From the NCBI GenBank assembly GCA_002269645.1, contig NIVC01003684.1, positions 18,972 through 82,971 on the forward strand: DNA of 64,000 nucleotides. The letters are read 5' to 3'. Positions 18,701-64,000 of this stretch are shown here, in pieces. Position 1 is the stretch's first letter, and the number at the start of each line of letters is the position of its first letter. Under the pieces are notes generated by a model, which did no database searches, was not told where the DNA came from, and worked only from the letters and a program-made list of their open reading frames with translations. This stretch comes from Macrostomum lignano (taxonomy: Eukaryota). The translations under genes were made by a program, and so were the position numbers.

Positions 18701-21700
18701 CCCAGATCCTCAGTTGCTGGGCAACCACCACCAGCCTCCCAGATCCTCAGTTGCTGGGCAACCACCACCAGCCTCCCAGATCCTCAGTTACTGGGCAACC
18801 ACCACCAGCCTCCCAGATCCTCAGTTACTGGGCAACCACCACCAGCCTCCCAGATCCTCAGTTGCTGACCCCCCACCACCAGCCTCCCAGATCCTCAGTT
18901 ACTGGGCAACCACCGCCAGTCTCCCAGATCCTCAGTTACTGGGCAACCACCGCCAGTCTCCCAGATCCTCAGTTACTGGGCAACCACCGCCAGTCTCCCA
19001 GATCCTCAGTTACTGGGCAACCACCGCCAGTCTCCCAGATTCTCAGTTACTGGGCAACCACCACCAGCCTCTCAGATTCTCAGTTACTGGGCAACCACCG
19101 CCAGTCTCCCAGATTCTCAGTTACTGGGCAACCACCACCAGCCTCTCAGATTCTCAGTTGCTGGGCTACCCTGCCATGTCCTCAAGATGCAAAAGAACTT
19201 TTTTAAAGTTTCTCAGAATTGAAATTCGCCAAAGACCCTTCAAGCCATCATTGGCCAACCTTGTGGTAGGCGATGCTGAAGGCATTCGAGACGCCCTGGA
19301 AGAACTGCATCTCGTGAGCCACGAAGTGCCTCTTGCGCACTGGATCAGCCACAGTGTCCACCGCCAGGGTGCCGAAAACCCGCTTCTGCCGGTCCTTCAG
19401 GGGCACCACGGCTAGAGCGCCGTCCACCTCCTGCAGATTGATGGCCTTGTTGAAGTAGTGCACCGATGGGTTGGCCGTCACTCGGGGCACGTGCAGCGGC
19501 TTGCCGGACTGGACCACCTGCCGATTGGGGTTGGGGTTGGAGTTGGAGTTGGGGTTGGAATTGGAGTTAGAGTTGGGGTTGGGGTTGGAGTTGGAGTTGG
19601 AGTTGGAGTTGGGGTTGGGGTTGGGGTTGGGGTTGGGATTGGAGTTGGAATTGGGGTTGGAGTTGGAGTTGGAGTTGGAGTTAGAGTTGGGGTTGGGGTT
19701 GGGGTTGGAATTGGAGTTGGGGTTGGAGTTAGGGTTGGAATTGGGGTTGGAGTTGAGGGGGGAGTTGCGGTTGGAGTTGGGGTTGGAGTTGGGGTTGGAG
19801 TTGGCGTTGGAGTTGGGAATGGGATTGGCGCACCTGAAAGCTGACACCGGTCTCGGACAGCTCGTACAGGCTCTGGCCGACCACAAAGTCGGCATCCTCA
19901 GGCGTGGCGGCCACGTAACGGAGCACCAGGCCGCCCAGCTCTGCCACATTCTCATTGTTGCTCTCTAGCAGGGCCAGATTAGCGCAGATCCTCTTGCCAT
20001 CGCCGTGCGTCTCCGCGTCGCGGTACAGCGCCCAGAACACGGCGCGGTACACCGGCTCCATGCTGGCGCCGCTCTCCTCACCGGCCAGTCGGATGCTGGC
20101 CAACCACTTCTTGCGCGCCGCGCCGCGGATTCGCTCCTGCTGGGAGCGCTCGACAGACTCGGCCATGAACTGGATGAGCTCCTCCATGCTGTCCGCCTCG
20201 CCGCCTGTCGTTGCCGCCGATTTGACGAAATCGCGAAATTCGCGCTTGGCCAGCCGGCTGTCCTGGTGCTGCTGCTGCTGCTTGGTTAGCTTGGACGACC
20301 GGCTCTTCAGCTCCTTCTTGGCTTTAACCAGGGCCTTGCGCAGGGTGGCGTCTTTGTACTTTAGCATGACGTTCTCCACTTCGTCTAGGTCGAGGAATCC
20401 GGAACCGTCGTTGTCCCAGAGCTGGAAGAGTTCGTCTAGCAGCACTTTGCGCTTGGCTGATAACTGGCGCTGTTGGATCTGCAGTGGCGGTATTAGGGGG
20501 CGGGTATTAGGGGGCGGGTATGAGTATGAGTATGAGGATAAGGATGAGTATGAGTATGAATATGAGCATGAGTATGAGGATGAGGATGAGTATGAGTATG
20601 AATATGAGCATGAGTATGAGGATGAGGATGAGTATGAGTATGAATATGAGCATGAGTATGAGGATGAGGATGAGTATGAGTATGAATATGAGTATGAGTA
20701 TGAGCATGAGCATGAGCATGAGCATGAGCATGAGTACGAGTACGAGTGTGAGTATGAGCATGAGCATGAGTATGAGTATGAGCATGAGCAAGAGTATGAG
20801 TATGAGTACGAGTACGAGTATGAGCATGAGCATGAGCATGAGCATGAGCATGAGTATGAGTGTGAGCATGAGCATGAGTATGAGTATGAGCATGAGCAAG
20901 AGTATGAGTATGAGCATGACTGAGTAAATACAGTATCAATACCACTCACCAGCTTAATCCTGGCCAGTCTCTCGTCCTCAGTCTCTACATATCCCTCCCG
21001 GACAAAGATGATCAAGTCCTCCATCAGGTCTTTCTTCGGCTCGTCACCAAGGAACGTCTCGGTGACGTGGACAAACTGGCCGTTGGTGAGATTCATCTCG
21101 TCAAAGGCGGACGATTTTGTCCGAGATGTGTCCGCCGTGCGATTGGAAATTCCGGCTGTTTAGGGAGCGTGCGGGGGTTACTTTGGGTATGACCGCTCTA
21201 GTGGGTCAGAGTAACTCACTGACTTCTCTAGTGGGTCAGAGTGACTCACTGACTGCTCTAGTGGGTCAGAGTGACTCACTGACTGCTCTAGTGGGTCAAA
21301 GTGACTCACTGACTGCTCTAGTGGGTCAGAGGGACTCACTTACTGCTCTAGTGGGTCAGAGTAACTCACTGACTTCTCTAGTCGGTCAGAGTAACTCACT
21401 GACTTCTCTAGTGGGTCAGAGTGACTCACTGACTGCTCTAGTGGGTCAGAGTGACTCTCACTCACTGCTCTAGTGGGTCAGAGTGACTCACTGACTGCTC
21501 TAGTGGGTCAGAGTGACTCACTGACTTCTCTAGTGGGTCAGAGTGACTCACTGACTTCTCTAGTGGGTCAGTGTGACTCACTGACTGCTCTAGTGGGTCA
21601 GAGGGACTCACTGACTGTTCTAGTGGGTCAGAGTGACTCAGTAGCACAACCGTTAAAACTGAATGTGCTTAAACTGAAAGCACTGGAAAAGTAAAAAATC

Positions 21701-27700: not shown

Positions 27701-30115
27701 TCGTCTAGGAGGAGATATGTATCACACAAACAGACAAACAACGCACCAACTTTAGTATTAACGAGTGGAACTCCTCCTTCGGAGGAGAAAGGGGAAGAAC
27801 TCCCATCACCGGAATTCCATTCCCTGAAATATCCATCAACTGAAATTCCATGTCTTGAACCCTATCTTCCAAATCGTCTCCAAATTCTTTACAAACCTTT
27901 CAAAGACTATAGCTCAAAGACTCTTACGTCTCTCATATCTCCTCTCTCCTCTCTTCGCTATTATCATGACTCTCTTCTCTCTCCTCTCTCTCTTCTCATC
28001 TCTACTCCCTTTATCTATCTCTTCTCCCTCGTCTTTCGTCTCTACTTTCTCCTTTCTCCTCTTCTCTCTCATCTCTCATCTGTACTCTTTTTCTTTCTCC
28101 TCTACTCTCTCCTCTTCTATTTCCTCTGTACGCTCTTATCCCTCCTCTCTTCTTTCTCCTCTTATCTCTCCTGTCTCCTCTTTGCTATCTTATATCTCCC
28201 CTCTCATCTCCTCTCTTCTTTTCTCTTCTCTCTCCTTCGTTCCCGCCTTACTCCCCTCTTCTCTCCCATCTGGCATGTCTAATCTCTCCACTCATTTCTA
28301 CTCTGTTTTCTATCATCTCATCTCTCTTCTCTTTTCATTCTTTTCCTTACTCTATTCTCTGACTGATTGAAGATGCCAAATACATCAAGATCCTCTCCGC
28401 GAAGCAGAAATCCTGTTCGTGCAACTGAAAACCATCGAAATCCTCTCCGTGAAACTGGACTCCTTCGAAATCCTCTCCTTGAAACCTGAATCCATCAAAA
28501 TTGTTTCCATAAAACAGAAATCAATCATAAATTATCTCAGCGAAACAGAAAGCCTCTCCGTGAAGCTGAACATGATCGAAATCCTCTCCGTGAAACTGAA
28601 GACCATGGAAATCCTTTCGTGAAACTGAACATCATCGAAATCCTCTCCACGAAACAGAAATCTTCTCCGTCAGAATTTAAACATTGAAATCGTCTCCGCT
28701 AAACTTGACTTAATCGAATTTTTTCCGTCAAACAACTCAACTCGCCAGATTCATTAGGGCTAGGGTTAAGGTTAGGGTTAGGGTTAGGGTTAGAACTACG
28801 CACAGCTTCGTGTTAAAAGGCACTGATAAAAATATTGAATTAATTGAATCAAATCATTGCGCAACCGATTTCACAGTCAGTCAGTATCAGTCTCAGTTAA
28901 AGTTAACAAAAACATTGCGCAATCTAAATCAACCCTCCAATACACAGCAGCAGTGAGAAGTTGAACCCTCCCCCAACTTTATCTATTACGTCTCGCAAAA
29001 CTGAGTACAATTTTTGCAGAAAGTTAAAAGTATGGAAATAGTTTTTTAAATGCGGTGCTTTTTCTTTTCATATTTAAAGCAAACAACTTATATCCCTAAA
29101 CTCAGCGTTGCAAGATCTTTCCAGCAATATAAGTCTCTCCTCTCAAAGTTTAAAACTCAAGGAGCAGTTAGCGTTTGAAATTTACCGATTTCCCGACTGC
29201 TTGCCTGAGAGGCTCGCAATTTTGTACATTGAATTTCACTGCCAAGCTAATACACAGGGCCGATAATAAAAAAGCTAACCAATTGAATCAATTGATTGCG
29301 CAATATATTTCTGTGTTAGTCAGTATAAGTCTCAGTTAAAGTTAACAAAAAGTTTGCGCAATCTAATCAACCCTCCAATACAAAGCAACTGACCCCCTTC
29401 CTATACACAGCGCCAGTTAGAAGTCGAAACCCCCAACTTTATCTCTCACCTCTCGCCAAAATGAGTACAATCTTTGCAGAAAGTTTAAAGTATGGAAATA
29501 GTTTTTGCAATGCAGAGCTTTTAGTTTTCATATTTGAAGCAAACAATTTATATCCCTGAAATCAGCTTTGCAAGTTCTTTCCAGCAATATAAATTTTTTC
29601 TCTCAAAGTTAAAAACTCGAGCAACAGTTTGCGTTTGAAACTTTCTGATTTAAAGCATTGAAATATCGATTGTACGTTCACTGCCTGCTAAAGAGGCCCG
29701 CAAGTTTATGCATTGAATTTCAAGGTTCAACAAAATCACAGGGCTGCCTATTGAAAATTAGAACACAAATCTTTGCGCAATTGTCTATACAGTCAGCCAG
29801 TGAGCCAGGGTCCGATTGTACACAGGCAGCCATTTAGAACGCCCCATCCCCCCACTGGAGAGAAAATACACTGCAGAGATAGGGAAAAGTTGTGGCGCAA
29901 TCACTTGAAATTCATGCAAATTTTCAGCTCCAAGCAGAAAGAGGGGACAATTAAGATTATCAAAGGTCAAGACCGCCGTTTTCTGCTTTTTTGAGGATCT
30001 TAGAAATTAAAATTTCAGAATTAAAATAGCCTATAGCCGACCTCGGATAATTTCCAATCTTCCCATATAAGTTTCAACGCTGAGTTGCCACTATTCAAGG
30101 AGGAGTTGTCGAAAT

Positions 30116-34421: not shown

Positions 34422-45342
<10,921 letters not shown>

Positions 45343-45434: not shown

Positions 45435-45960
45435 TGACTAACCACCCTCTCATTCACCCACCTTCTCATTCACCCACCCTCTCATTCACCCACCCTCTCA
45501 ATCACCCACCCTCTCATTCACCCACCCCCTCATTCACCCACCCCTACCCTCTCATTCACCGACCCTCTCATTCACCCACTCCCTCATTCACCCACCCTCT
45601 CATTCACCCACCCTCTCATTCACCCACACTCTAATTCACCCACCCTCTCAATCACCCACCCCTCATTCACCCACCCCCTACCCTCTCATTCACCCACCCT
45701 CTCATATACCCACCCTCTCATTCACCCACTCCCTCATTCACCCACACTCTCATTCACCCACCGATCATTCACCCACCCTCTAATTCACGCACCCTCTCAA
45801 TCACCCACCCCTCATTCACCCACCCCTACCCTCTCATTCACCGACCCTCTCATTCACCCACACCCTCATTCACCCACCCCCTCATTCACCCACCCCCTCA
45901 TTCATCCACCCCCTCATTCACCCACACCCTCATTCACCCACCCCCTCATTCACCAACCCC
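45435..45960. repeat. ~17-bp repeat (CATTCACCCACCCTCT)n downstream of the DZANK1 stop
   Basis: Visible directly. Confidence 0.9.
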
Positions 45961-49433: not shown

Positions 49434-49700
49434 CAGGGGTTGGCAACCTCCGGCCCGGAAGAGGGAGAGGGAGGAAGAGGGAAGAGGGAGTGAGGAAGAG
49501 GGGTAATGAGGGAGAGGGGTAGTGAGGGGGAGAGGTAGTGAGGAAGAGGGGTAATGAGGGAGAGGGGTAGTGAGGGGGAGGGGTAGTGAGGAAGAGGGGT
49601 AATGAGGGAGAGGGGTAGTGAGGGGGAGGGGTAGTGAGGAAGAGGGGTCCTTTGAAACTTCACAATAGCAATCCGGCCCGCTCAAGGCTTGTGTCTTTTC
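49434..49700 (+). mobile_element. hAT/Charlie (MER58-like) element end, interrupted by a 16-bp GA-rich array
   Basis: CAGGGGTTGGCAACCTCCGGCCCG at 49434 and subterminal GGGTCCTTTGAAACTTCACAATAGCAATCCGGCCCGCTC (49645-49683). Confidence 0.6.
49460..49645. repeat. 16-bp GA-rich repeat (TAGTGAGGGAGAGGGG)n-like; second copy at 51250-51510
   Basis: Visible directly at two sites. Confidence 0.9.
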
Positions 49701-49704
49701 TCAG

Positions 49705-50545
49705 CTCTCTCTCCTCTCCTCTCCTCTCCTCTCCTCTCCTCTCCTCTCCTCTCCTCTCCTCTCCTCTCCTCTCCTCTCCTCTCCTCTCCTCTCCTCTCCT
49801 CTCCTCTCCTCTCCTCTCCTCTCCTCTCCTCTCCTCTCCTCTCCTCTCCTCTCCTCTCCTCTCCTCTCCTCTCCTCTCCTCTCCTCTCCTCTCCTCTCCT
49901 CTCCTCTCCTCTCCTCTCCTCTCCTCTCCTCTCCTCTCCTCTCCTCTCCTCTCCTCTCCTCTCCTCTCCTCTCCTCTCCTCTCCTCTCCTCTATCTCCTC
50001 TCCTCTCCTCTATCTCCTCTCCTCTCCTCTATCTCCTCTCCTCTCCTCTCCTCTCTCTCCTCTCCTCTCCTCTCCTCTCTCCTCTCCTCTCTCTCCTCTC
50101 CTCTCCTCTATCTCCTCTCCTCTCCTCTCCTCTCCTCTCCTCTCTCTCCTCTCCTCTCCTCTCTCTCCTCTCCTCTCTCTCTCCTCTCCTCTCTCTCCTC
50201 TCCTCTCCTCTCTCTCCTCTCCTCTCTCTCTCCTCTCCTCTCCTTTCCTCTCCTTTCCTCTCTTCTCCTCTCCTCTCCTCTCCTCTCTCCTCTCCTTTCC
50301 TCTCTTCTCCTCTCCTCTCCTCTCCTCTCTCCTCTCCTTTCCTCTCTTCTCCTCTCCTCTCCTCTCCTCTCCTTTCCTCTCTTCTCCTCTCCTCTCCTCT
50401 CCTCTCTCCTCTCCTCTCCTTTCCTCTCCTTTCCTCTCTTCTCCTCTCCTCTCCTCTCCTCTCTCCTCTCCTCTCCTCTCTCCTGTCCTCTCCTCTCCTC
50501 TCTCTCCTCTCCTCTCCTCTCTCCTCTCCTCTCCTCTCCTCTCCA
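49705..50545. repeat. (CTCCT)n polypyrimidine array
   Basis: Visible directly. Confidence 0.98.
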
Positions 50546-52301
50546 TTATTCTTTCGCATATCATTTCTCCTATTTCTCTTGTCTCTTATCTATTTCCTCT
50601 GACCCTCTCCTCTCTGCCCTCCGCAGTCATGCCACTAGATTCTCTATCTGGCCCTTGATGTAAAAGAGTTTGCCGACACGTGAATTATCGTGTCCAACTA
50701 AGCTCAGCTCCAGAGCACCCTGCTGTGCCGGAACTTTCAAAACCATGAAACGCCTTTAGGATCCAAGCGAAGTAGCATCTAGAGAACAGACAGGTGTGTA
50801 CTCCTATCTTCAGTTTTATTTATTAACCTGAAACTGAACTGAGCTGGCCTCAGCTAGTTCGCGAAGTAATCTTGGCATTGTTGATCGATAAACAAAACGA
50901 GGGAAACGAGGAAAACACAACGGCCAGCTCGAGAGACTGACAGGGTGCAGCGGGAGAGAAGGGGTGTGAAATGGCCTGTAGCCTCTTCCACCACTCGTAT
51001 AATCTGCAAGTATGATAAATCATAAATGAATTCGCAGACAGGAGACAACGGAAACTTGGATGGAGATTATGGGGGTGGGCAGGAAGAGACCAGAGAGACA
51101 GAGACTGGTGAATGGATGGGAATATTAGTTAGTTAATTAGGAGACTTATAGAGATATTAGGGTTTGAAGGAATTATGAAGAGATGCGACAGGAACAGTAT
51201 AAGGGTAGGGTAGGTTGAGAGAGGTAATGACGGACTGACGAAATAATGGAGAGGTTGTGAGGGAGAGGGGTAGTGAGGGAGAGGGGTAGTGAGGGAGAGG
51301 GGTAGTGAGGGAGAGGGGTAGTGAGGGAGAGGGGTAGTGAGGGAGAGGGGTAGTGAGGGAGAGGGGTAGTGAGGGAGAGGGGTAGTGAGGGAGAGGGGTA
51401 GTGAGGGAGAGGGTAGTGAGGGGAGGGGTAGTGAGGGAGAGGGGTAGTGAGGGAGAGGGGTAGTGAGGGAGAGGGGTAGTGAGGGAGAGGGGTAGTGAGG
51501 GAGAGGGGTAGCGATTGAGAGGTGGTGAGGGAATGGTGAAGAGAGGTAGCAGTGAGGCCAGGAACGGAGAGCAATGATGGAGAAAGGTATTGCAGAGACT
51601 GTGGATGCAGTACATGCCTGAAAGAGTGTGCCTGGCTGAAGCGCGCAGCGGAGGAGGCCCAGCAGCTGATTGCCAAAGCAAAGCAACAAATTGCGGTCTC
51701 GAATACAGTTTTTCACAAGAAAAATCATCGCACAAAAACTGATATTATGAAATAGTTAACAAATTAAGATTGCAGACAAAAACAGTTAGGGGGTGAAAAA
51801 TTGAAATGATTGTTCAATTTTAGGATCGGGCACAGCGGGGGGGGCTTTGGTGGCACACAGTTGGACATAAAGTGAAATAATAAAAAACACGCAGAGCTTT
51901 TTGAGTCAAAATTATAGAAGAACTAATTGTGCGCTAATGAATAGAGCAGTGGAATGAACGGCTCAATAAAGAATTCAGCGATTACATAGACCTATAATTT
52001 GAGGCCAATTATTTAACTGCGCTCCAACGAGCTGTGAATAATGAACGCACCTTAGTCTTGTCATATGAGAAATTCCCCCCCAATGAGCCTTTTGGAATCT
52101 ACACTAGGGAATTCCAATAAATCTCAACCTGAACATATAAGAAATTCCCCCTATGAACTGGAATTTACAGTAGGGAATTCCGATGAGTCTAAGCCTAATC
52201 ATACGAGAAATCCCCCCCCAATGAGCCTTTTGAAATCCACCTCGTACAGACTGCTTCCCTTAGTCAAGGATTCCATCTATGGAGTTAATCCGCAGCCCTA
52301 A

Positions 52302-55300
52302 TTAGAAGGGATTAATCCTGGCGCCAGTCATGCTAGGCGAGAACGGGTTCACCTTGGCCCACATGTACGCATCGTTCAGCCCGATGGTGAACCGGCCGTC
52401 CTCCAGGTAAAACACCGGCCCCCTGATTCGCTTTTCCATGAAGAAGCAGTTGTCGAAGTCAGAGTGGTACGGCAGGGCGCTGCCGGCGGCCACATCTTCG
52501 CCGACCTCCAGGCCGGTGTCCCCAGCGCACTTGCGCACCAGCCCGCGCCACACCGGCCGCATCTCCTCCGGCAGGTGGCGCTCGTCGGCGCTGCCGCCCG
52601 AGCGCCTCATCAGCTTCCAGGCGTGCAGCTCCTTGTCCAGCAGCGACCCGGTCAGCGCCCGGCCCAGCCCGGCCATGGCGTCTTTGTGCCGCTCGAAGTG
52701 AAGCCGGGCGTGCCGAAACAGCGGCGCCACCACGGAGTGGTAGCCCTGCCTGATGGCCTTCAACGCGCCCAGGTAGGTGGCCAGGAACAGCAGCTCGTTC
52801 TTCTCCTGCACGGCGGAGGCCTGCTGTAGCTTGCCGGTGCGAGCGCAGCTCATCAGCTCCACGAGCGCCTCCACGCAGTTCAACGTCCACGGCGAGTCGC
52901 GATCGTTAAGAATGTCGCGCACCGCGGCCAGACCGAACTCCAGGCCAGCCAGCGGGTTGGGCGACAGCAGATAGTGGCCGACAATGTCCAGCTGGAGGCG
53001 CAGCCGAGACTCCGGCGTGCCAGAAGCGCCAGTCGGAGCGTCGGCCCGCAGCCGCTCGGCGATCTCCAGGCAGGCGTCCAGGCCGGGCAGGCCCAGCACG
53101 CGGTGTACAGCGTCAATGTCGCCAGCCGAGCCCGAGAAGCGGCAGGCGAACGCCACCAGGAGGTCCTGGCGCCGGCTGTGTAGCTCCGCCAGCTTGGCCA
53201 GCAGCTCCGCCCGGCGCTTGGCGTCCAGGCCGGGCAGCCTGTCGAGCCGCCAGCCGCTCCACTCGGCGGCGAAGTTGCGCAGCCGCTGGTCGCAGGACTC
53301 GACTCGCGTCGCCAGCCAGAGCGCCAAGTCGAGCTCGTTGCCGCGCAGCAGCTTGCCGACGGCCGATCCAACGTCGCCGATGGCCAAGTGGCAACAGGCG
53401 GCGTCCACCGGGGCGCCGCGCTGAAACAGACTGTCGGCCAGGCTGCCCCAGGCCGTGCGCAGCCGATCTGGGCTGCTGACGCCGGGCCTGCGGTATTCCC
53501 GGGATTCGTCCGGATCGTCCGGCCCGGCGAACAGGCCCTCGTGCGCAGCCTGCGCCACCATCAGCGCGTCCGAATATTTCCCGCGCCGGGAGAGCAACTG
53601 GGCGGCGGAGTCGGCCGCCCCGGTGGCCACGGAGAAAGCAACTAGGTCGTCGAGTTCCAGGCTTCGCTGGCTGGCCATGTACCGGTGGCACAGCTCGCGC
53701 CAGAAGGCCTGAGAGACGCCCGGCGCCAGGGCCAGGGCGCGCTCCCACCGGCCCAGCTGGGCCTGCAGCTCGCAGTAGCGGCGCAGGTTGCCGCAGCGCA
53801 GATGGGCCGCGGCAGCGTCCCGCAGCTGTCGGTGCCGCGAAGTCGGCCGTCCGGCCGTCGCCACCGATGCCGACGAGGACAAGGAATTGGAGGCGGCCAG
53901 TTCGAGCTGCTGGGCCCTGGCGGCCTGGAACTTCAGCAGGTCCTTGGCGGCCACGTAGCTGCCGGGCCGGCCGTAGGAGTCGCCAAGCGCGGCTGTCGGC
54001 GTGCCGGCGAGCGCCCGCTGCAGGTCATGCAGGTTGCCGGCAGCCGGGCTGGCGTGCAGCAGCAGAACCAGCTGGTCGCCGCCGCAGCTGCTGGTGCTGC
54101 CGACCACGCTGCCAGCATCGCGGAGAAGCCGGCGCGACTGGCTGCCGGACAGAGCCGGCTGGCCCGGCTGCTGCCTGAGCGCGGCTTCGGCCGGCAGGAT
54201 GAAGGAGTCGGCCATGCCGCGGAACAGCAGGCAGGCGGGCAGGGGGCCGGCCAGCTCGGCAAGCGACCACAGCCGCAGCGTGGAGTCGCGCGAGCACGAG
54301 GCCAGCAGCATGGGGCGGCGCGGGTGCAGCGCCAGGCCGTAGACGTCGGAGCGGTGGTCGGTGACGGCCGCCAGACAGGAGCCGTCGCGGATGTCCCAGC
54401 AGTGGATGTGGCAGTCCCAGCTGCCGGACACGAGCATGTAGGCCAACTCGGGGTGCCAGACAAGGCCGCGCACTGGCCCGGTGTGGCCTTTGAGGTGGGC
54501 GACGCTCTTCTCGGCGGTGCAGTCCCAGACTCGAATCGTGCCGTCGTCCGAGCCGCTGCACAGGTAGCTCTCGCGCAGCGGCGACCAGCGCACGCCGAAC
54601 ACCTTGCTGGCGTGGCCGGTGAAAACTCGGTTGGGCCGGTCGCCGCCGGCGCTGGCCAGATAGAAGATCCGAACAGCTTTGTCCTCGCAGGCTGTGGCCA
54701 GAATGTCGCGCGAGTGCTGGTGCCAGGCGACGCCGTAGACAGCGGCCGGGTGGCTCAACCGGCGGGCAAGTCGGCCGCAGTCGTCTCGCACAACGCAGGT
54801 GCAGTCGGCCGAGGCCGAGGCGAGATGGTGCGGCGCCTTGGCGCTCCAGCTGACGCAGTAGACCGCCTGCTGGCCGTGCTCGGTAAAGCGGCTGTCGATG
54901 CAGCCAGTGGCGACGTCGAGGACGAAGATGCCGTTCTTGGCGGTGGCTCCGGCTACGCGCGCGCCGTCCGGGCTCCAGGCGATGCTGTAGACGATGCCCT
55001 CGTTGTCCGGCGAGCTCTGCACCGGGCTGAAGCCGGCGCCGCTGATCCGCCAGAGCTTCACGGTGCCGTCGAAGCTGCCGGTGGCCAGCAGGCTCTCGTC
55101 CCGCGGGCTGAACTCGCAGTCGAAGACGGTCTCGACGTGGCCCATTTCGCGCAGGAAGTGCCAGTCCCGACGCTGAACGTCGTACAGCCCGACTCCGCCG
55201 TCCAGAAAGGCGCACAGCAGCAGGCAGTCGGGCAGGCAGTAGCCCCCGACGGTTGTCGCAGTCGCCGATGAAGAAGCCGTCGAAGCTGCCGTCGAGTCGC

Positions 55301-56342
55301 AGCCGGCGTCCCCGACAGTTGGCGGCTCTAACGGCGCGGCGGAGCACCCCGTCGAGGCCAGCACGCGCAGATTGCGGAAGCCGGACTTTTTCACGCGGAT
55401 GTTATCGATCGGGGTGGCCCGGGACACGCTGTAGAGCCGCAGCACGCCTGTGGCGGAGTCGCCGGCAACGAACAGGCCGGGAGCGCTAGGCAGCCAGGCC
55501 AGGCTGTGCGCCGGAGAAGCAGCCGAGGGCAGCTGGAACACCACGCTGGTCGTCTGCGCGTCCACATCAACCAGTCGCAGGCCGTTGCAGCGCGAGTCCA
55601 CCAGAAGGAAATTCGGCGACAGAGCGTCCCATTCAAGGCCAAGCACGGTGTCCTCGGCGTCTTCTTCGTCCTCGGCGAGGTCGTCCTCGGCCTCGAGGAA
55701 GCTGACTCGACGCAGAGCTTTCTTGCCGGGCCGGACAACGCTCAGCGTGCCGTCCTCGTGGCCCAGGGCGATGCGTCCAGCAGCTTCGCTGGAGTTGGCA
55801 GCTCCGGCCGGGTGCCAGCGGTAGATTGTCACCTGACTGGCCAGGGCCTGCGTCTCCTTGTGCACTGCCGGCGTCTGCGAGGCCGACCCGGCGGCGCCGC
55901 TATAGTTCCACAGCATCAGCGGGCCGCCGCCGTCAAGGAAGCCGACGGTGCCGTGGCTGTGCGGCAGGAAGGAGGCGCATCGCGGCTGCATCGGCTCCGG
56001 CAGGGCCAGGCGAACCAGCGGCGCCTGCTTGCGGACGTTCCACACCAGCAGCAGCGGATCCAGGCTCGCCGACACGAACAGATCGCCGTCGGCTGGGTGC
56101 CAGGACAGCGAGGTGACGGTCTTCTTGTGCTGCGCCATGACGCTGACCAGCTGGTAGGGCCCGCCGCCGCCCGGCTTGGCCTGCTCGTAGACATAGACGG
56201 CCAGGGTGGCTGCGAAGGCGAACCTACTGGCGTCCGGCGAGCAGGCCAGCGTGTCGGAGCTCCAGGGCTGGCAGCCGGCCTCCAGCAGCGCCAGCTGACG
56301 CACCTGACACGGCATTGTGTAGGGAAACACTGTGCTCATCAT
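52302..56342 (-). CDS. WDR17: WD repeat-containing protein 17 ortholog, 1346 aa, single coding exon
   Basis: Uninterrupted ORF. N-terminal QVRQLALLEAGCQPW...FAFAATLAVYVY, many WD40 repeats (GHVETVFDCEF, GHASKVF, GHTGPVRGL), and the C-terminal LNDAYMWAKVNPFSPSMTGARINPF characteristic of WDR17. Confidence 0.95.
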   Translation of the reverse strand: MMSTVFPYTMPCQVRQLALLEAGCQPWSSDTLACSPDASRFAFAATLAVYVYEQAKPGGGGPYQLVSVMAQHKKTVTSLSWHPADGDLFVSASLDPLLLVWNVRKQAPLVRLALPEPMQPRCASFLPHSHGTVGFLDGGGPLMLWNYSGAAGSASQTPAVHKETQALASQVTIYRWHPAGAANSSEAAGRIALGHEDGTLSVVRPGKKALRRVSFLEAEDDLAEDEEDAEDTVLGLEWDALSPNFLLVDSRCNGLRLVDVDAQTTSVVFQLPSAASPAHSLAWLPSAPGLFVAGDSATGVLRLYSVSRATPIDNIRVKKSGFRNLRVLASTGCSAAPLEPPTVGDAGCDSTAASTASSSATATTVGGYCLPDCLLLCAFLDGGVGLYDVQRRDWHFLREMGHVETVFDCEFSPRDESLLATGSFDGTVKLWRISGAGFSPVQSSPDNEGIVYSIAWSPDGARVAGATAKNGIFVLDVATGCIDSRFTEHGQQAVYCVSWSAKAPHHLASASADCTCVVRDDCGRLARRLSHPAAVYGVAWHQHSRDILATACEDKAVRIFYLASAGGDRPNRVFTGHASKVFGVRWSPLRESYLCSGSDDGTIRVWDCTAEKSVAHLKGHTGPVRGLVWHPELAYMLVSGSWDCHIHCWDIRDGSCLAAVTDHRSDVYGLALHPRRPMLLASCSRDSTLRLWSLAELAGPLPACLLFRGMADSFILPAEAALRQQPGQPALSGSQSRRLLRDAGSVVGSTSSCGGDQLVLLLHASPAAGNLHDLQRALAGTPTAALGDSYGRPGSYVAAKDLLKFQAARAQQLELAASNSLSSSASVATAGRPTSRHRQLRDAAAAHLRCGNLRRYCELQAQLGRWERALALAPGVSQAFWRELCHRYMASQRSLELDDLVAFSVATGAADSAAQLLSRRGKYSDALMVAQAAHEGLFAGPDDPDESREYRRPGVSSPDRLRTAWGSLADSLFQRGAPVDAACCHLAIGDVGSAVGKLLRGNELDLALWLATRVESCDQRLRNFAAEWSGWRLDRLPGLDAKRRAELLAKLAELHSRRQDLLVAFACRFSGSAGDIDAVHRVLGLPGLDACLEIAERLRADAPTGASGTPESRLRLQLDIVGHYLLSPNPLAGLEFGLAAVRDILNDRDSPWTLNCVEALVELMSCARTGKLQQASAVQEKNELLFLATYLGALKAIRQGYHSVVAPLFRHARLHFERHKDAMAGLGRALTGSLLDKELHAWKLMRRSGGSADERHLPEEMRPVWRGLVRKCAGDTGLEVGEDVAAGSALPYHSDFDNCFFMEKRIRGPVFYLEDGRFTIGLNDAYMWAKVNPFSPSMTGARINPF

Positions 56343-57157
56343 GATGACTGCTCCTGCTCCTGCTGCCCGTGGCTCCTTTGAGTCTTTTGAGCTGATGAAG
56401 CGAGGTTAATAACAAAAAATCGGGGAGCAAGGACACAGAGGCGGCAGCTGCTGACAGACTGACAGGAATTGCAAAAAAAACTATACAGTGGGAAGAAGTG
56501 AGCGAAATGTTGCTTTAGTCCTCAGATGCGCCACCCCTTAGCCATGCCGAGTTCGCACCCTCCTCCCTCCCTTATCCCCCTTCCTCCCGCTCTCCCCTCC
56601 CCCCTGTGTGTTTGCCGGGGTGAAGGGGACGCATTTTTTGCATTGGCTGGAAGCTGCAGCAGCAAATACCGCCTCGAATTCAGCATATCCTCAGCCCGCC
56701 TCTCTCTCTCTGCTCACCGCCCATTCAGTAATAAGCTGCTGGTGGCTCTACAGTCACACTTCTCATCCGCTGCTGTTGCTGCTAGGCCCCTCAGTGGGGA
56801 GGGTGGCACCCAATGGTGGGCTAAGGGTAGGCAGGGACGGAGAAGAAATGAAACGAAAGACAATAGAAAAGCAAGGCGGTCTTTAAGTGGGCGAGGAATG
56901 CAGCAAGAGATGATGAGGGAGGAAGAAGAAGATGTCTCTTTGACAAGAAGACAAGAACAGGTACAAGATGAAGGATATAGATTTGCTAATCTGTTGCCAG
57001 ACCAGGCCGTCTTCTAGAGGAGACCCGCGTTCTCCCCCTCCACCTGGCTTCTTGTTTTCTTCCCGTCCCGGATTTTTTCTGCTTCTGGAAGCGGAGGGAA
57101 CGGCTGCAGGGGGTTACAATAGTGCAAGCGAGTGTAAACAGGGTAGAGGGCAAACAC

Positions 57158-57171
57158 TGGGCCATGGCAAC
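57158..57171. promoter_or_regulatory. RFX X-box-like motif TGGGCCATGGCAAC ~820 bp upstream of WDR17
   Basis: 11/14 match to GTTGCCATGGCAAC with a perfect CCATGGCAAC half, in the upstream region of a cilia-associated gene. Confidence 0.4.
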
Positions 57172-57664
57172 TCAGCCAGGTGGTCTCGCACTCTCCCCTT
57201 TCCCTCTGGGTATCGTTTGCTTTTCCCTCTCTTTTCCTGTGCCTCCGTTTCCCTACAACTCTCCGGAACTCGAAGCCGGTGACTCGGCGGCTGTCTAATC
57301 CGTCTAAATTTCTCGTTTCATGGATCTCTACATCATCTAATCTTTGTTACTTGGATACTTTTGAAGGGCTCAAGCAGTTACTGAAAAAACTGAGAGAGGG
57401 GGAGACGGAAGAGTAGTCCTCAAACCCCGAAGCACTGAGGCCGTAACGCAGATGTATAAGCAAAGTGACGATATTTCGAATATTCTATGCTCTTCCTCAG
57501 GACTGACACTGACGCGAATACTCGTATTTTTAAGCCAGGTGTTCTCCGATGTAAAGGCAAGAAACTGAGAGTTCGATGGGTGAGTGGAGAGTGCGCAAAT
57601 GTAAATTAAAAACGTGCGCAGACACTGTGCACATCAGAATTAGTCGGAGACTCTGAAGAGCCTA

Positions 57665-58290
57665 ATGAGTGAGGGGAGAGGAGGAGAGAGGGGAGAGAGG
57701 AGGGGAGAGAGGAGTGGACAGAGGAGGGGAGAGAGGAAGGAACAAAGGAGGGGAGAGAGGAGGGGAGAGAGGGAACAGAGGAGGGGAGAGAGGGAACAGA
57801 GGAGGGGAGAGAGGGAACAGAGGAGGGGAGAGAGGCAACAGAGGAGGGGAGAGAGGCAACAGAGGAGGGGAGGGAGGGAACAGAGGAGGGGAGAGAGGCA
57901 ACAGAGGAGGGGAGGGAGGGAACAGAGGAGGGGAGAGAGGCAACAGAGGAGGGGAGAGAGGAGGCGAGAGAGGAGGCGAGAGAAGAGGCGAGAGAGGAGG
58001 GAAGAATGGAGGAGAGCGAGAGAGGAGGGGAGAGACGAGGGGAGAGACGAGGGAAAGAGGAGGGGAGAGAGGAGGGGAGAGAGGGAACAGAGGAGGAGAG
58101 AGAGGGAGAGAGGAGGGGAGAGAGGCAACAGAGGAGGGGAGAGAGGGAACAGAGGAGGGGAGAGAGGCAACAGAGGAGGGGAGAGAGAAGGAGAGAGAGG
58201 CGAGAGAGGAGAGGGGAGAGGGAAGTAGGCGAAGGGAAAGAGAGAGGAGGGGAGAGAGAAGCGAGGGGAGGGGGGTGAGAGAGGAGAGGA
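57665..58290. repeat. GA-rich polypurine array (GAGGAGGGGAGAGAGG…)
   Basis: Visible directly; complementary in composition to 49705-50545. Confidence 0.95.
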
Positions 58291-58295
58291 GTTAA

Positions 58296-58380
58296 AAAGA
58301 AAAGAGAAGAGTCACAAACCCGGAGCGGGCCGGATCGCTATTGTGAAGTTTCAAAGGACCCGAGGGCCGGCACACCCCAG
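58296..58380 (-). mobile_element. Inverted copy of the hAT/Charlie-like end at 49434-49700
   Basis: The reverse complement of 58323-58361 matches 49645-49683 at 38/39 nt and extends to a truncated CTGGGGTGTGCCGGCCCTCGGG. Confidence 0.65.
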
Positions 58381-59664
58381 ATTTACAAGCTCAAAATTCG
58401 CCAGTCGCTTCTTCTAGCTCGAAAACTTTCCATTGTAGAGCTTGTGAAGCTTCGCTCCAACGAAAGTAACAAGCAGGACTTCTCGACGATGCCCCTAACC
58501 TGGCAAGAGTTCACTAAATGAGTGAACTCTTTTTTTTGGTCTGCTGGTTACCAAAGATCCGGAACTCGGTTTTCAGGGCGGTGTGGCCGCATTTAATTCT
58601 GGGGTGGTAGCTTCTTCTGCAGTCCTCGTGAGCCCTTTTGTGCAAAACTGCGCGAGGCCTCAGGAGAGCCTAATTCTAATCCTAATCCTAATCCTAATTC
58701 TAATCGATACGGCACAGTTATTGTCCATTTCTTCACTTTTATTCTGCAGCAAACAAGCAAACCAGAAATAAATTTATTGGTGAAGGCGAGGGTTAAAAAA
58801 TAGTAATATTTCAACGTGTCTAACATTGACCACTATATACTCGTAGTTGAGAAGAGTCGAGCTTATTAGCTGGCGACTTATAAAAATCGATAATTTTCAA
58901 TCAAGAATTATAAAGGCACTGCAACAACCTCCCCTCCTCGCATCCCTTTCTCCCCCTTTCTCTGTAAGTTTTCTTTCGTTTCTCCTCTTTAAAATGGACC
59001 AGAATTTCTAGCCATCAGCTCTTCCACCCTTCCTCGGCTAACCGCGGCCCTGAAAGTCAAGCGAATCTGCTGAAGTGTTGCAAATGAAAGTAGAAATAGT
59101 GAAAGTGCACTATTCCTATTCAGTATGTATTATATTATACAATAAGTTGGAGCCGCGCCCGACCCGAATGTCGACTCAATCACGCGTGGAAGAATTAGAA
59201 ACAGTTATAGACGAGAGCCTCACCTCAACTTGGTGGGGTGCGCCTTCGGCTTTTGCTATGCTACCCCTTCTTTCGCCACACCACGGTACTCTTACCTCTC
59301 TGCCGACTGTCCCCTGGGGCCAACGAGCTTCGATCTTTGCTGGCTGGTAGATCATTCTGCTTCTGGCGGGGGGGGGGGGTCGTAGCGCTCGTCCTACTCT
59401 ACTATGCTCTGCTTTCAGGGCATTCGATTTCCCCGTCAAAGTCGCTGCTCCCTCCCTTCCCAACAGCGGGAAAAGAATCAGTGCAGCCTGCGCCGATTGA
59501 AATGCCGGCAGCGCCACCCAATTTCCGTTCAGTTTTGACAAGTAAAAGCGGTGCGAATCGTGCAACACTGTTGGAGAATCGACCCGGATATCGAGGAGAA
59601 CATCCGGCAGGCAACCGGGATTCTCAGAGGCCTGTCGTGCGATTCAACAGCTATGAGGGCCAAC

Positions 59665-59808
59665 CCCCAAGGCACAGAGAGTGCACACACATTCCTTACA
59701 ATTAGAAAGTACATTATTGGCGCGCTTGTATGCGCTCCCCAAGGCACAGAGACTGCACACACATTCCTGACAATTAGAAAGTACATTATTGGCGCGCTTG
59801 TATGCGCT
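59665..59808. repeat. 72-bp direct tandem duplication
   Basis: CCCCAAGGCACAGAGA…GCGCTTGTATGCGCT occurs twice. Confidence 0.9.
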
Positions 59809-60429
59809 CAAAAGTCAGCGGAATTGGCAGAATTGCCTTTAGCACTTGGTCGCTGGTAATCGGCCGGGATGTCTTTTTTTGTCGAGATGACGCCTTCGCG
59901 AGTAGAGCTCTGGGCCGACTGGCAGGCAAATTTCTTCCCGATCGATGTCAAGCGTTGCTGGGGGCGCAATGAAGGACGAGTCGGGGAAGAGGCAGATCAG
60001 AAGCTTGGGCCTGTGGAAGGGAGACCGTGGCTCTAGGGGATGAGTTTCGAGCAGGGCATAGTTTGTTAAGAGAGCTGGAGGCTGGAGACACAACAGAGGC
60101 AGTTGGCACTATAGCCAGATAAACTTTTGTACGCGACGAAACATTTGCAGAAGATGTACGAAAGGACAGCGACTGAGGGAGAATGAGAACGAAATTAAAT
60201 GATGAAGCGCTGCATATAGGGGAGCGGAATATTGAGATCTGAGAGGCTGACTACAAGCTAGATGAAAGTGAATTCCCCCTAGCTAGCCGCTCCCCCGTAT
60301 CATGCCAAATATAAGGAAGGAGTGAAAAAGCAGTAGGGGACAAAATTTCCATTAAAAAGCTTTTAATGGCTTTTCTAACTTCATTCAAAATTACCATGGA
60401 TGGCTATTTGTTATCTAATACTCAAGGTA

Positions 60430-61960: not shown

Positions 61961-62852
61961 CTTTACACAAAAGTACAATTTTCAAGGTGAGCCGTGCCCC
62001 GTAAGCTCTCCAGACTCAATTGTGTCTCAGATTTCGTGTGAGCCGCACAAGCGAAGTGCCCATTATCATCAGCTCACGCGCCAGTTCAGAGCAGCATTTC
62101 AAGCACTCCAGACAGGCTTAGAAAGCCTTCCTGTGAGTCAATTTGGCTCTCAGCGCACTGTGCCTCGAGTAGAAAAGAACGATGAAGAAAAAGCAAGCTC
62201 TGATTGCGCACTTTATACGGTTAGTTATTTTTCTCCCCATGCCAACCGTAATTAGATTGCCCCCTAAGGCGAGCGGGGCCAGCAGATGGACAGGTTCGGT
62301 GCCAGCCACTCAGGACAGCTCACCGACTGCCACTTACTACAATATAGTAAATATGAGCTAATGCTCAGCTTGACGGGTGGCAAATTAAGGGACAGAGAAA
62401 GACCAAGAGTGCCTTCCCGTGGAGATGATAGTGCAGTACCTCAACTGAGAGCACAATGCAATCTCTTCTGCTCATTCCTTTCCTCTCTCATGCCTCTCCT
62501 TACCTGGTCTGCTTCTGCTTCCCCCGTCGGCGCCCCAAATTTCTATAGCAGCGCCAGAAGACATTCACTGTCGCCGTAACAGAGCAAAACTGTGCCAACT
62601 TTATGAAGGAATTTTCCTTATTGCTCACATGAAACTGCCTGAGTTCTGCAAAATCTTGTCTTCCTGCAAAAGCAGATTGGTCATAAGAAATTCCACTTGA
62701 AAAACCGGTTGGCTTAAAGGTTTCAAAACTCCAAGGTTTAAAATCACTTGGACTATCACCGGAAGTGACGTTGGTTGAAAATCACTTGGACAATCACCGG
62801 AAGTGACATTGGTTCAGGATCACCAGTACAATAACCAGAAATAGTACCGCAA

Positions 62853-63023
62853 ATGCAGGCAGGTGTACAGTCCAGAGCTCCGGTCGTGGTCAGCCTTCTG
62901 AGCTGGTTTTGCTGCCTTCTCGTGTCGGGCCAGCTGAGGACGGAGCAGCAGCAGGCGGCCCTCGACTTTCACAACGAACTGCGGGCATCGGTAGTGCCGA
63001 CTGCGGCTAATATGCGAATGCTG
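62853..63023 (+). CDS. Secreted CAP/SCP (cysteine-rich secretory / PI16-like) protein, exon 1
   Basis: Signal peptide followed by ALDFHNELRASVVPTAANMRML (CAP HNxxR...P.A.NM motif); CTG|GTGAGT donor. Confidence 0.85.
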
Positions 63024-63104
63024 GTGAGTCAGCATCTTCATCTGCTCATTGGCTTCTTTTATTTCGTAGAAGATAGCTCTAATAGAGAGTGGTTCAGCTG
63101 TATG

Positions 63105-63600
63105 GTAGAGAGAGAGGGTTCCGTTGTAAGAGAGAGGCTTCAGTTTAGGGTAGAGAGAGGGTTCCGCTGTAGGGTAGAGAGAGGGTTCCGCTGTAGGGTA
63201 GAGAGAGGGTTCCGTTGTAGGGTAGAGAGGGTTCCGCTGTAGGGTGGAGAGAGGGTTCCGCTGTAGGGTAGAGAGAGGGTTCCGCTGTAGGGTAGAGAGA
63301 GGGTTCCGCTGTAGGGTAGAGAGAGGGTTCCGCTGTAGGGTAGAGAGAGGGTTCCGCTGTAGGGTAGAGAGAGGGTTCCACTGTAGGGTAGAGAATGGGT
63401 TCCGCTGTAGGGTAGAGAATGGGCTCCGCTGTAGGGTAGAGAGAGGGTTCCGCTGTAGGGTAGAGAGAGGGTTCCGCTGTAAGAAAGAGGGTTCCGCTGT
63501 AAGAGAGAGGGTTCCGTTGTAGGGTAGAGAATGGGCTCCGCTGTAGGGTAGAAAGAGGGTTCCGCTGTAGGGTAGAGAAAGGGTTCCGCTGTAGAGTAGA
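63105..63600. repeat. 24-bp minisatellite (GGGTTCCGCTGTAGGGTAGAGAGA)n in the CAP gene intron
   Basis: Visible directly. Confidence 0.95.
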
Positions 63601-63677
63601 GAGAGGATTAGGCTATAAGAATAAAAAGTACTTTCGCTGTAAGCTGCTTCTCTAATCTGCGCCACGCTCCGCCCCAG

Positions 63678-63908
63678 GCGTGGTCCAGCCGTCTGGCAGC
63701 CTGGCGCAGGCCGCGGCAGACAAGTGCATCTTCGAGCACAACTACGGAGGCGACTACGCGGCCTGGGCGAGAATCTGTACATGGGCGGCCGGACATCAAA
63801 TCGGCGATCATGCTTTGGTACACCGAGGGCGAGAATTACAATTTCGCTACTGGCTCGTGCAGTCCCGGACGATATCCATCGTATACAACCTGTGGCCATT
63901 GGAGCCAG
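63678..63908 (+). CDS. CAP/SCP protein exon 2 (three -1 indels; gene continues beyond the window)
   Basis: CCCCAG|AWSSRL...AQAAADKCIFEHN...GLGENLY...WYTEGENYNF...C..CGHWSQ|GTAGGC. The motifs are split over three frames: pseudogene or assembly error. Confidence 0.75.
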
Positions 63909-64000
63909 GTAGGCAGCTTTGTACTCTTGTTGCTGCTAGAGACCATTTTATGCTCATTGTAAGACATCAAACTCAGATCGAAATCCAACACACTACCGGT

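Follow-up and report, generated by a model that had tools for sequence, protein, structure and literature searches.

Two inverted copies of a short repeat bracket an intronless WDR17 gene in Macrostomum lignano

The FB and FB-like elements of Drosophila, including the FB-flanked composite 'TE' units, have unequal inverted arms in which a unique terminal segment is followed by tandem repeats, and the arms enclose an unrelated loop. The hAT MITEs (MER58/Charlie-like) are short, non-coding and located near gene ends. The mini-me/DINE-1 elements of Drosophila and the MINE-type elements of Lepidoptera combine a short conserved head with an internal microsatellite, which is hypervariable and expands in each copy on its own. 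Inversions with staggered breaks are documented in Drosophila to leave duplications, and there inverted copies of about 1 kb end a unique segment that has neither a target-site duplication (TSD) nor partner ends. Orphan retrogenes and genes with cDNA-mediated intron loss keep a complete coding sequence without the ancestral introns while their neighbors keep theirs, and they are the sole recorded copy. Features of all these systems are found in 64 kb of nuclear DNA from Macrostomum lignano (the window, which is the whole stretch of DNA analyzed), where inverted copies of one short repeat bracket an intronless WDR17 gene. Are the two copies the ends of one mobile unit that captured the gene, or do they have separate histories?

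The two copies are connected by an inverted match between 49646-49683 on the plus strand and 58323-58360 on the minus strand that is identical at 37 of 38 positions; a match of any kind was obtained in 0 of 100 shuffles. The inverted, near-identical segment described in an earlier sequence-only reading is thus real. Without gaps the match extends to 58 nt at 90% (49645-49702 and 58304-58361). A two-arm nhmmer profile finds just two copies in the 64-kb window, with E values of 3e-22 and 3e-20, and the arms span 49434-50545 and 57665-58380 (1.1 and 0.72 kb). In each copy, a head of about 85 bp with a sharp outer edge leads into a polypyrimidine array. The homology of the heads begins abruptly at the outer termini, outside of which the sequences are unrelated, and the inner flanks of the two copies also show no homology when compared. 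In the left head the homology to the right copy starts exactly at the outer terminal segment (49434-49459, plus strand, CAGGGGTTGGCAACCTCCGGCCCGGA), and the conserved core (49645-49705, plus strand) is identical to the right copy at 52 of 58 positions, with 38 of 39 in its first part. The right head (58304-58380, minus strand) reads CTGGGGTGTGCCGGCCCTCGGGTCCTTTGAAACTTCACAATAGCGATCCGGCCCGCTCCGGGTTTGTGACTCTTCTC and has its outer boundary at 58380. The terminus of the repeat unit is CAGGGG in the left variant or CTGGGG in the right one, continuing to CCGGCCC. The CAGGGG termini proposed for both ends are therefore present in the left copy and not in the right, which reads CTGGGGTGTGCCGGCCC. Other features of the head are a near-palindrome, GGTTGGCAACC, and a repeated CCGGCCCG. 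The outermost 26 columns, with 11 matches, 8 mismatches and a 7-nt gap, are more diverged than the core (Fisher p=0.004). A 30-nt core of the head gave 0 matches in metagenome and prokaryote collections, the head's three open frames gave no candidate in a protein search, and a literature text search for the terminal motifs returned primer matches only.

The arrays differ in period. The left polypyrimidine array, (CTCTC)n, lies at 49705-50545 on the plus strand (TRF 49705-50544, period 5, 167 copies) and belongs to the repeated unit. The right array, at 57665-58291 on the minus strand, is polypurine on the plus strand and CT-rich on the element strand (TRF 57671-58291, periods 12/21/42). The 6-mer cosine between the left array and the reverse complement of the right array is 0.58, compared with 0.07-0.23 for other arrays in the window, and nearly all blocks of at least 90% purine or pyrimidine in the 64 kb are the arrays adjoining the heads, the left one being one of only two blocks with at least 90% pyrimidine. 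Both TRF and the 6-mer comparison bear out the complementary CT/GA arrays described inward of both heads. The left head also contains a GA-rich 16-mer minisatellite (49461-49648, plus strand, GAGGGGTAGTGAGGGA) of 188 bp with a 48-bp higher-order unit that was inserted or expanded inside the head; it is private to this head and missing from the right copy. A second array of the same 16-mer is located at 51249-51522 (plus strand), in the 3' flank or 3' UTR of WDR17, and has a 6-mer cosine of 0.83 with the minisatellite of the left head.

The likeness of the heads to MER58/Charlie-like ends is a lead only, measured against what we take to be the consensus. Like the hAT MITEs, the copies are short, non-coding and near gene ends, and in the left copy CAGGGG is followed by GGCAA and GGCCC motifs. 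However, the right terminus, CTGGGG, is not followed by the GGCAAC block, neither copy has a significant partner terminal inverted repeat (TIR), and most of each copy is a long internal polypyrimidine array. An 8-bp TSD is missing both at the outer pair and at the candidate boundaries of single copies. The outer flanks (CAACATCA and ATTTACAA) are alike at 2 of 8 positions, so the outer pair has no TSD, either of 8 or of 9 bp and with small shifts allowed, as the sequence-only reading had cautioned for 8 bp; hAT membership fails for this reason. Inward of the arrays there are no copies of either outer flank within 1 mismatch.

The statement that no partner end lies next to either copy also holds. 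None was found by nhmmer over the window, and ungapped scans and a gapped arm scan, which reached only about the 99th percentile, were non-significant. By eye, a weak candidate for the partner terminus of the left copy is seen at 50666-50682 (minus strand, CACGTGTCGGCAAACTC), which matches the left terminus at 13 of 17 positions; it is not statistically supported, and a 13/17 match is reached at 3 positions in the window. A weak candidate for the inner end of the right copy at 57526-57547 (plus strand, ATTTTTAAG/CCAGGTGTTCTCC) is likewise not statistically supported. Its 9-mer agrees with the outer flank ATTTACAAG at 7 of 9 positions, and the candidate TIR of the right copy is CCAGGTGT at 57535. 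In a joint scan for TIR and TSD, the candidates at 50682 and 57535 are non-significant, with about 0.24 expected by chance in 1.8 kb.

The mini-me/DINE-1 and MINE-type elements resemble the two copies in having a short conserved head joined to an internal microsatellite of variable length, and TSDs are often missing or unclear in those elements too. Unlike them, the copies in M. lignano have no detectable 3' stem-loop, CTRR end or common 3' part. A Helitron signature was rejected: A/TC precedes both heads at their outer boundaries, which is at most suggestive, but a CTRR/T 3' end and a hairpin were not found by eye. The head was also considered as a SINE or a structured RNA and rejected, as its folding z-scores are near 0 and its Rfam matches are sub-threshold and miRNA-like; the latter are attributed to pairing of the GA minisatellite with the CT array.

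The two copies are probably separate members of one dispersed non-autonomous repeat that lie around a resident WDR17 with one-step intron loss, and do not form a transposition unit. The repeat unit would consist of the head of about 85 bp and a freely expanding polypyrimidine microsatellite. The left copy would lie just past the likely 3' end of the WDR17 transcript, and the right copy 1.3-2.0 kb upstream of the start codon. From the two copies known in the window, we infer that the family dispersed by independent insertion, and its class may be that of a hAT-like MITE, a tail-bearing retroposon or a Helitron-like element. The private minisatellite of the left head counts against a single mobilization event, as do the unlike outer flanks (2 of 8 positions) and termini whose divergence far exceeds that of the core. 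Repeats make up more than half of the M. lignano genome, and simple or tandem ones account for 15% (PMC5730564); the window itself is crowded with arrays, so two copies of the same family within 9 kb are unremarkable. Two observations count against separate copies: considered as TIR elements both are incomplete, each being without its own partner end or TSD, and the heads are placed exactly as the terminal inverted repeats of one element would be.

The WDR17 coding sequence (52302-56342, minus strand) is a single exon encoding 1346 aa plus a stop codon. The ORF encodes a full-length WDR17: named WDR17 proteins of several phyla align over 99% of the query at 39-41% identity (E=0), and WD40 and beta-propeller Pfam families are matched as well. 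The other interior ORFs have no Pfam match. Its GC3 is 0.88, compared with 0.85 for the largest DZANK1 exon. A horizontal origin of this GC-rich gene was rejected, since its GC3 matches that of the neighboring exon and the closest named homologs among the matches listed are animal WDR17. The best match is the M. lignano UniRef entry A0A1I8HAM5, which is identical outside frameshifted stretches. The search proposed in the sequence-only reading for other WDR17 copies was run on proteins, and among 5.8 billion of them no further M. lignano WDR17 is recorded beyond A0A1I8HAM5, be it a parent or a second cassette. Exact look-ups with the WDR17 ORF and an EF-hand ORF gave no match, and the cluster look-up returned the UniRef model alone. 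Parts of A0A1I8HAM5 map beyond the right arm (59848-60009 and 62835-63074), which speaks for the same locus or a segmentally duplicated one and not for a transposed cassette.

The 5' and 3' surroundings of the gene contain several signals. A splice-acceptor-like site, TTCATCAG/C (56387-56394, minus strand), lies 52 nt upstream of the ATG; it is a cis acceptor in the UniRef gene model, and it fits 5 of 6 positions of the M. lignano spliced-leader (SL) trans-splice acceptor motif [T/C]TNCAG. The putative exon of that model at 59848-60009 has GT/AG borders. The two distal upstream 'exons' of the model were not accepted as genuine 5' sequence of the gene; lying antisense to a CAP-domain coding sequence, they were probably predicted in error. 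Of the X-box attributed to the upstream region there is only a half-site (GTTGCCATGGCCC, near 57163 on the minus strand), and no full X-box, GTHNYYATRRNAAC, is present within 1 mismatch in 56343-59900. Downstream of the stop codon, the only AATAAA(TAAA) on the gene strand is found at 50815-50824 (minus strand), at a distance of 1.48 kb. It may serve as a poly(A) signal and is not followed by an A-tract.

How the gene came to be without introns is a separate matter from the repeats. WDR17 of Capitella teleta has 23 coding exons and 22 introns, whereas the coding sequence here has zero introns. The adjoining DZANK1-like gene has at least 7 coding exons, compared with 15 in Physella, and has kept at least 6 of about 14 introns (about 40%). 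At that retention rate, the probability that 0 of 22 introns would be left by independent loss is about 4.5e-6 to 5e-6. The intronless, processed character of WDR17 noted in the sequence-only reading is thus confirmed, and one-step, cDNA-mediated loss is well supported by the comparison with Capitella and with the neighboring gene. WDR17 looks like a resident copy from which all introns went in a single step. About 22 ancestral coding introns would have been removed in one reverse-transcriptase-mediated event, in which either a cDNA recombined into the original locus or an old retrocopy replaced its parent.

A related explanation takes WDR17 for a classical retrocopy, an mRNA copy that LINE activity inserted at a new locus, with later loss of the parent. 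This explanation concerns the gene alone and is therefore compatible with the separate-copy reading of the repeats. We regard it as possible but doubtful. The loss of all of the roughly 22 coding introns next to a gene that retains about 40% of its own would be expected of a retrocopy, LINE reverse-transcriptase sources are present in the window, and the window contains no homolog of the CH_2/SPATA4-like gene that neighbors WDR17 tail-to-tail in Capitella. Gene order in flatworms, however, is reported to be rapidly rearranged, so lost synteny is weak evidence. The gene resembles described orphan retrogenes and cases of cDNA-mediated intron loss in its complete intronless coding sequence, its intron-bearing neighbor and its single recorded copy, but it differs from them in several respects. 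Within 1.8 kb of the stop codon, the gene strand has no A-run of at least 6, in agreement with the caveat in the sequence-only reading that a poly(A) remnant is lacking. Neither the 35-nt SL nor its 3' half has a match near WDR17, and no flanking direct repeats (TSD) are recognized. The retained acceptor-like site 52 nt 5' of the ATG fits a retained 5' intron or an outron better than a retrocopy.

The repeats may alternatively have been produced by an inversion. Staggered breaks would have left a single segment of about 0.8-1.1 kb, comprising the head and the CT array, as inverted duplicates at the two ends of the inversion; the head would not be transposable and the WDR17 segment would be inverted. 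Like the breakpoint duplications of Drosophila, the window has exactly two copies in 64 kb, in inverted orientation and with a unique segment between them. Neither a TSD nor a partner end was found, and the two arrays are specifically similar to each other. The head, however, looks like a transposon in its CAGGGG start, its near-palindrome and its internal repeat, unlike the Drosophila duplications. The excess divergence of the outer 26 columns is also not predicted by simple decay after duplication. An inversion is unlikely on balance.

Even less probable is that the two ends are the arms of a foldback-like or Pack-type composite DNA element of about 8.9 kb, with inverted termini and a loop that holds the processed WDR17 and its upstream region. 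The termini point outward as in a single element, the long inverted arms have a conserved head followed by short tandem repeats as in Drosophila FB, no partner end was found beside either arm by nhmmer or the joint TIR and TSD scan, and the enclosed gene is intronless. The arms also enclose approximately one transcription unit; some 130 bp separate the putative poly(A) signal (50815) from the weak candidate inner end of the left copy (50682). Unlike FB, however, the locus has no 9-bp TSD, its arrays differ in period (5 bp versus 12/21/42 bp), and it is a single instance without evidence of mobility. The extreme termini, which a transposase must recognize, are the least conserved part of the heads. 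The window ORFs that were scanned include no transposase, protein records hold no second cassette or parent gene, and the other record of the gene extends past the right arm. Foldback or Pack-type elements very rarely capture a gene of 4 kb in full, promoter included. The proposal that one mobile 8.9-kb unit captured WDR17 is thus not supported, and its more specific form, a single foldback-like element with unequal arms in which a complete retrogene was later moved as cargo by a DNA transposon and the TSD was erased, deserves hardly any credence. Both this explanation and the inversion keep a small probability because neither copy has a demonstrable partner end of its own.

If a composite element were present after all, it would be one of the rare cases in which a foldback-type element carries an entire functional gene. 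With separate copies, the repeats represent an ordinary situation in a very repeat-rich genome, in which an uncharacterized, microsatellite-bearing family has two copies beside a gene. WDR17 itself is a conserved 4-kb ciliary gene that lacks about 22 coding introns next to a gene that kept about 40% of its own. It offers a clear spiralian case of intron loss that was concerted and reverse-transcriptase-mediated, and it may be used to ask how frequent concerted intron loss is in Macrostomum.

The WDR17 open reading frame (52302-56342, minus strand, 1346 aa) has WD40 and beta-propeller Pfam matches and aligns over 99% of its length, with 39-41% identity, to named WDR17 proteins of hemichordates, molluscs, echinoderms, annelids and vertebrates. 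The best match is UniRef A0A1I8HAM5, a predicted M. lignano protein that is identical except where its model is frameshifted, which places the window in M. lignano; no second M. lignano WDR17 was found in the protein collection searched. The GC3 of WDR17 (0.88) is close to that of the largest exon of the neighbouring DZANK1-like gene (0.85), thus the GC-rich island is native coding sequence.

The sequence-only reading described WDR17 as intronless and anomalous among its neighbours, and this was confirmed. WDR17 has one coding exon here versus 23 (in 5.9 kb) in Capitella teleta. The DZANK1-like gene, at 34422-45309 (plus strand), is convergent with WDR17 and like it cilium-associated. Its coding exons between 34.4 and 45.3 kb number at least 7, versus 15 in Physella DZANK1, and part of the ancestral intron positions are merged and part retained. 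At the retention rate of this gene the probability of keeping 0 of 22 introns is ~4.5e-6, which makes WDR17 anomalous. M. lignano genes have ~5 introns on average (PMC5730564). The reasonable mechanism is a loss that was concerted and cDNA-mediated, and the absence of introns is best explained by a single reverse transcriptase-mediated event. Two results count against a retrocopy of recent date: an A-tract was looked for up to 1.8 kb from the stop and not found, in agreement with the earlier failure to see a poly(A) remnant, and the 35-nt spliced leader (PMC8629364) has no remnant here either. A good-quality acceptor-like site, TTCATCAG/C, lies 52 nt upstream of the ATG, and past the stop the gene strand has a single AATAAA, at 50815-50824. 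The "X-box" described upstream of the gene is a half-site only.

In Capitella teleta (KB309538.1, 10001-18468) WDR17 and a CH_2-domain (SPATA4/SPEF1-like) gene are arranged tail-to-tail, 1 kb apart. Human WDR17 and SPATA4 have the same adjacency, and the microsynteny would then be old. The M. lignano window has no CH_2/SPATA4-like gene, and the loss of this neighbour is weak evidence for relocation of WDR17.

Two inverted repeat copies flank the gene. The left copy begins at 49434 (plus strand) with the outer terminus CAGGGGTTGGCAACCTCCGGCCCGGA, followed by a private 188-bp GA-rich 16-mer minisatellite within its head (49461-49648); next come the 61-bp core (49645-49705) and, up to 50545, a (CTCTC)n array of 840 bp. 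The right copy runs on the minus strand and starts at 58380 with the outer terminus CTGGGGTGTGCCGGCCCTCG, then the core, then a 626-bp array (57665-58291; CT-rich on the minus and GA-rich on the plus strand) with 12/21/42-bp periods. The inverted match noticed earlier is real: a 38-nt core query is found exactly at 49646-49683 and with 1 mismatch at 58323-58360 (minus strand), 0/100 shuffles matched, and the ungapped match reaches 58 nt at 90% identity. A two-arm nhmmer profile run on the whole window detected these two copies (E 3e-22 and 3e-20) and no other match below E=0.3. Homology starts precisely at an outer C(A/T)GGGG, and both the outer flanks and the inner flanks beyond the arrays are unrelated. 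CAGGGG termini had been assigned to both copies, but the right one reads CTGGGG.

Blocks whose pyrimidine or purine content over 100 nt is 90% or higher are scarce in the window (49676-50601, 49452-49571, 57653-58320 and 27964-28272), and the last is without an adjoining head. When the right array is reverse-complemented, its 6-mer spectrum and that of the left array have a cosine of 0.58, above the 0.07-0.34 of either array against the other arrays tested. Since the arrays resemble each other and belong to a rare tract type, the repeated unit consists of a head of ~85 bp and a polypyrimidine array, and the two copies have since undergone different expansions. The head fold is not unusual, and sub-threshold miRNA-like Rfam matches at 49554-49794 probably reflect pairing of the GA minisatellite with the CT array. 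The 16-mer family (GAGGGGTAGTGAGGGA, with a variant 12/16 similar on the other strand) is present three times within 6 kb, at 45442-45959, 49461-49648 and 51249-51522, and the two plus-strand arrays have a 6-mer cosine of 0.83; local spread of the minisatellite is suggested.

The flanking repeats are probably two separate copies of one dispersed repeat. The M. lignano genome is more than half repetitive (PMC5730564) and the window is packed with arrays, so that finding two members of one family 9 kb from each other, in one of the four possible orientation combinations, is not surprising. As reported earlier, no partner end could be demonstrated for either copy. Two candidates were picked by eye: on the left GAGTTTGCCGACACGTG ending at 50682, which matches the left terminus at 13/17 and is one of three such window positions, and on the right ATTTTTAAG/CCAGGTGT at 57526-57542. 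Neither was detected by nhmmer, and a joint TIR+TSD statistic gives ~0.24 equal or better sites as the chance expectation over the 1.8 kb scanned. This is compatible with two incomplete or TIR-less copies, with a foldback-like pair, or with an inverted duplication at inversion breakpoints, the breakpoint origin being unlikely.

That the 8.9-kb interval (49434-58380) is one composite or foldback unit carrying WDR17, as was proposed, is very improbable: the missing partner ends would fit it, but its one testable hallmark, a target-site duplication, fails, as first noted (the 8 bp outside the termini share 2/8 positions, and shifts reveal none), the outermost 26 alignment columns (11 matches, 8 mismatches, a 7-nt gap) are diverged relative to the core (52/58; Fisher p=0.004) so that the part needed by a transposase is the least conserved, the left head has its private minisatellite, and interior ORFs besides WDR17 have no Pfam match. 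Whole-gene capture by a composite element is rare.

The N-terminal extension of A0A1I8HAM5 also argues against a single unit. It maps to 60009-59848 and 63074-62835 (minus strand; 98-100% identical, few substitutions), both outside the right arm, thus the sole other WDR17 record shares context past the interval. In this model the exon at 59848-60009 is spliced to the WDR17 exon (56394, minus strand) via a 3.45-kb intron with canonical GT...AG borders, which would hold the entire right copy. Alternatively, the acceptor at 56394 could serve spliced-leader trans-splicing. Of the upstream exons in the model, the two distal ones are antisense to a plus-strand CAP/cysteine-rich secretory protein coding sequence and are probably artefacts. 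To recover the CAP domain (62835-63960; PF00188, E 8e-12), three frames have to be stitched together, which indicates short introns or else a frameshifted pseudogene; a GTGAGT donor follows ...NMRML.

Other features were observed in the window. A near-perfect palindrome in 10462-12075 (683-nt arms at 10473-11155 and 11380-12062, 95% complementary, 224-nt spacer) has termini that include poly-G/poly-C, additional internal sub-repeats and no Pfam match in its ORFs; it is a far better foldback-type structure than the WDR17-flanking pair. A fragmented non-LTR-type retroelement at 5972-7995 (plus strand) is degraded, since its reverse transcriptase (PF00078, E 8e-9) and its RNase H (PF00075, E 7e-8) do not share a frame. 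A SUEL-type lectin exon is present at 13426-13755 (plus strand; PF02140, E 1e-18). A 455-aa single ORF at 19729-21096 (minus strand), broken by 12/18-bp coding repeats, has EF-hand matches below the Pfam cut-off (best E 5e-5). Exons of ~1 kb or longer are found in further ORFs too. In the DZANK1-like gene, 16-, 21- and 34-bp tandem arrays fill a 4.7-kb gap between exons at 38.4 and 43.1 kb, and GC3 is 0.85 in the long exon versus 0.64-0.74 in the short ones.

If the exon at 59848-60009 is real, the WDR17 transcription unit begins outside the proposed transposon. Overall, this is an ordinary arrangement of repeats and genes with one modestly interesting feature.
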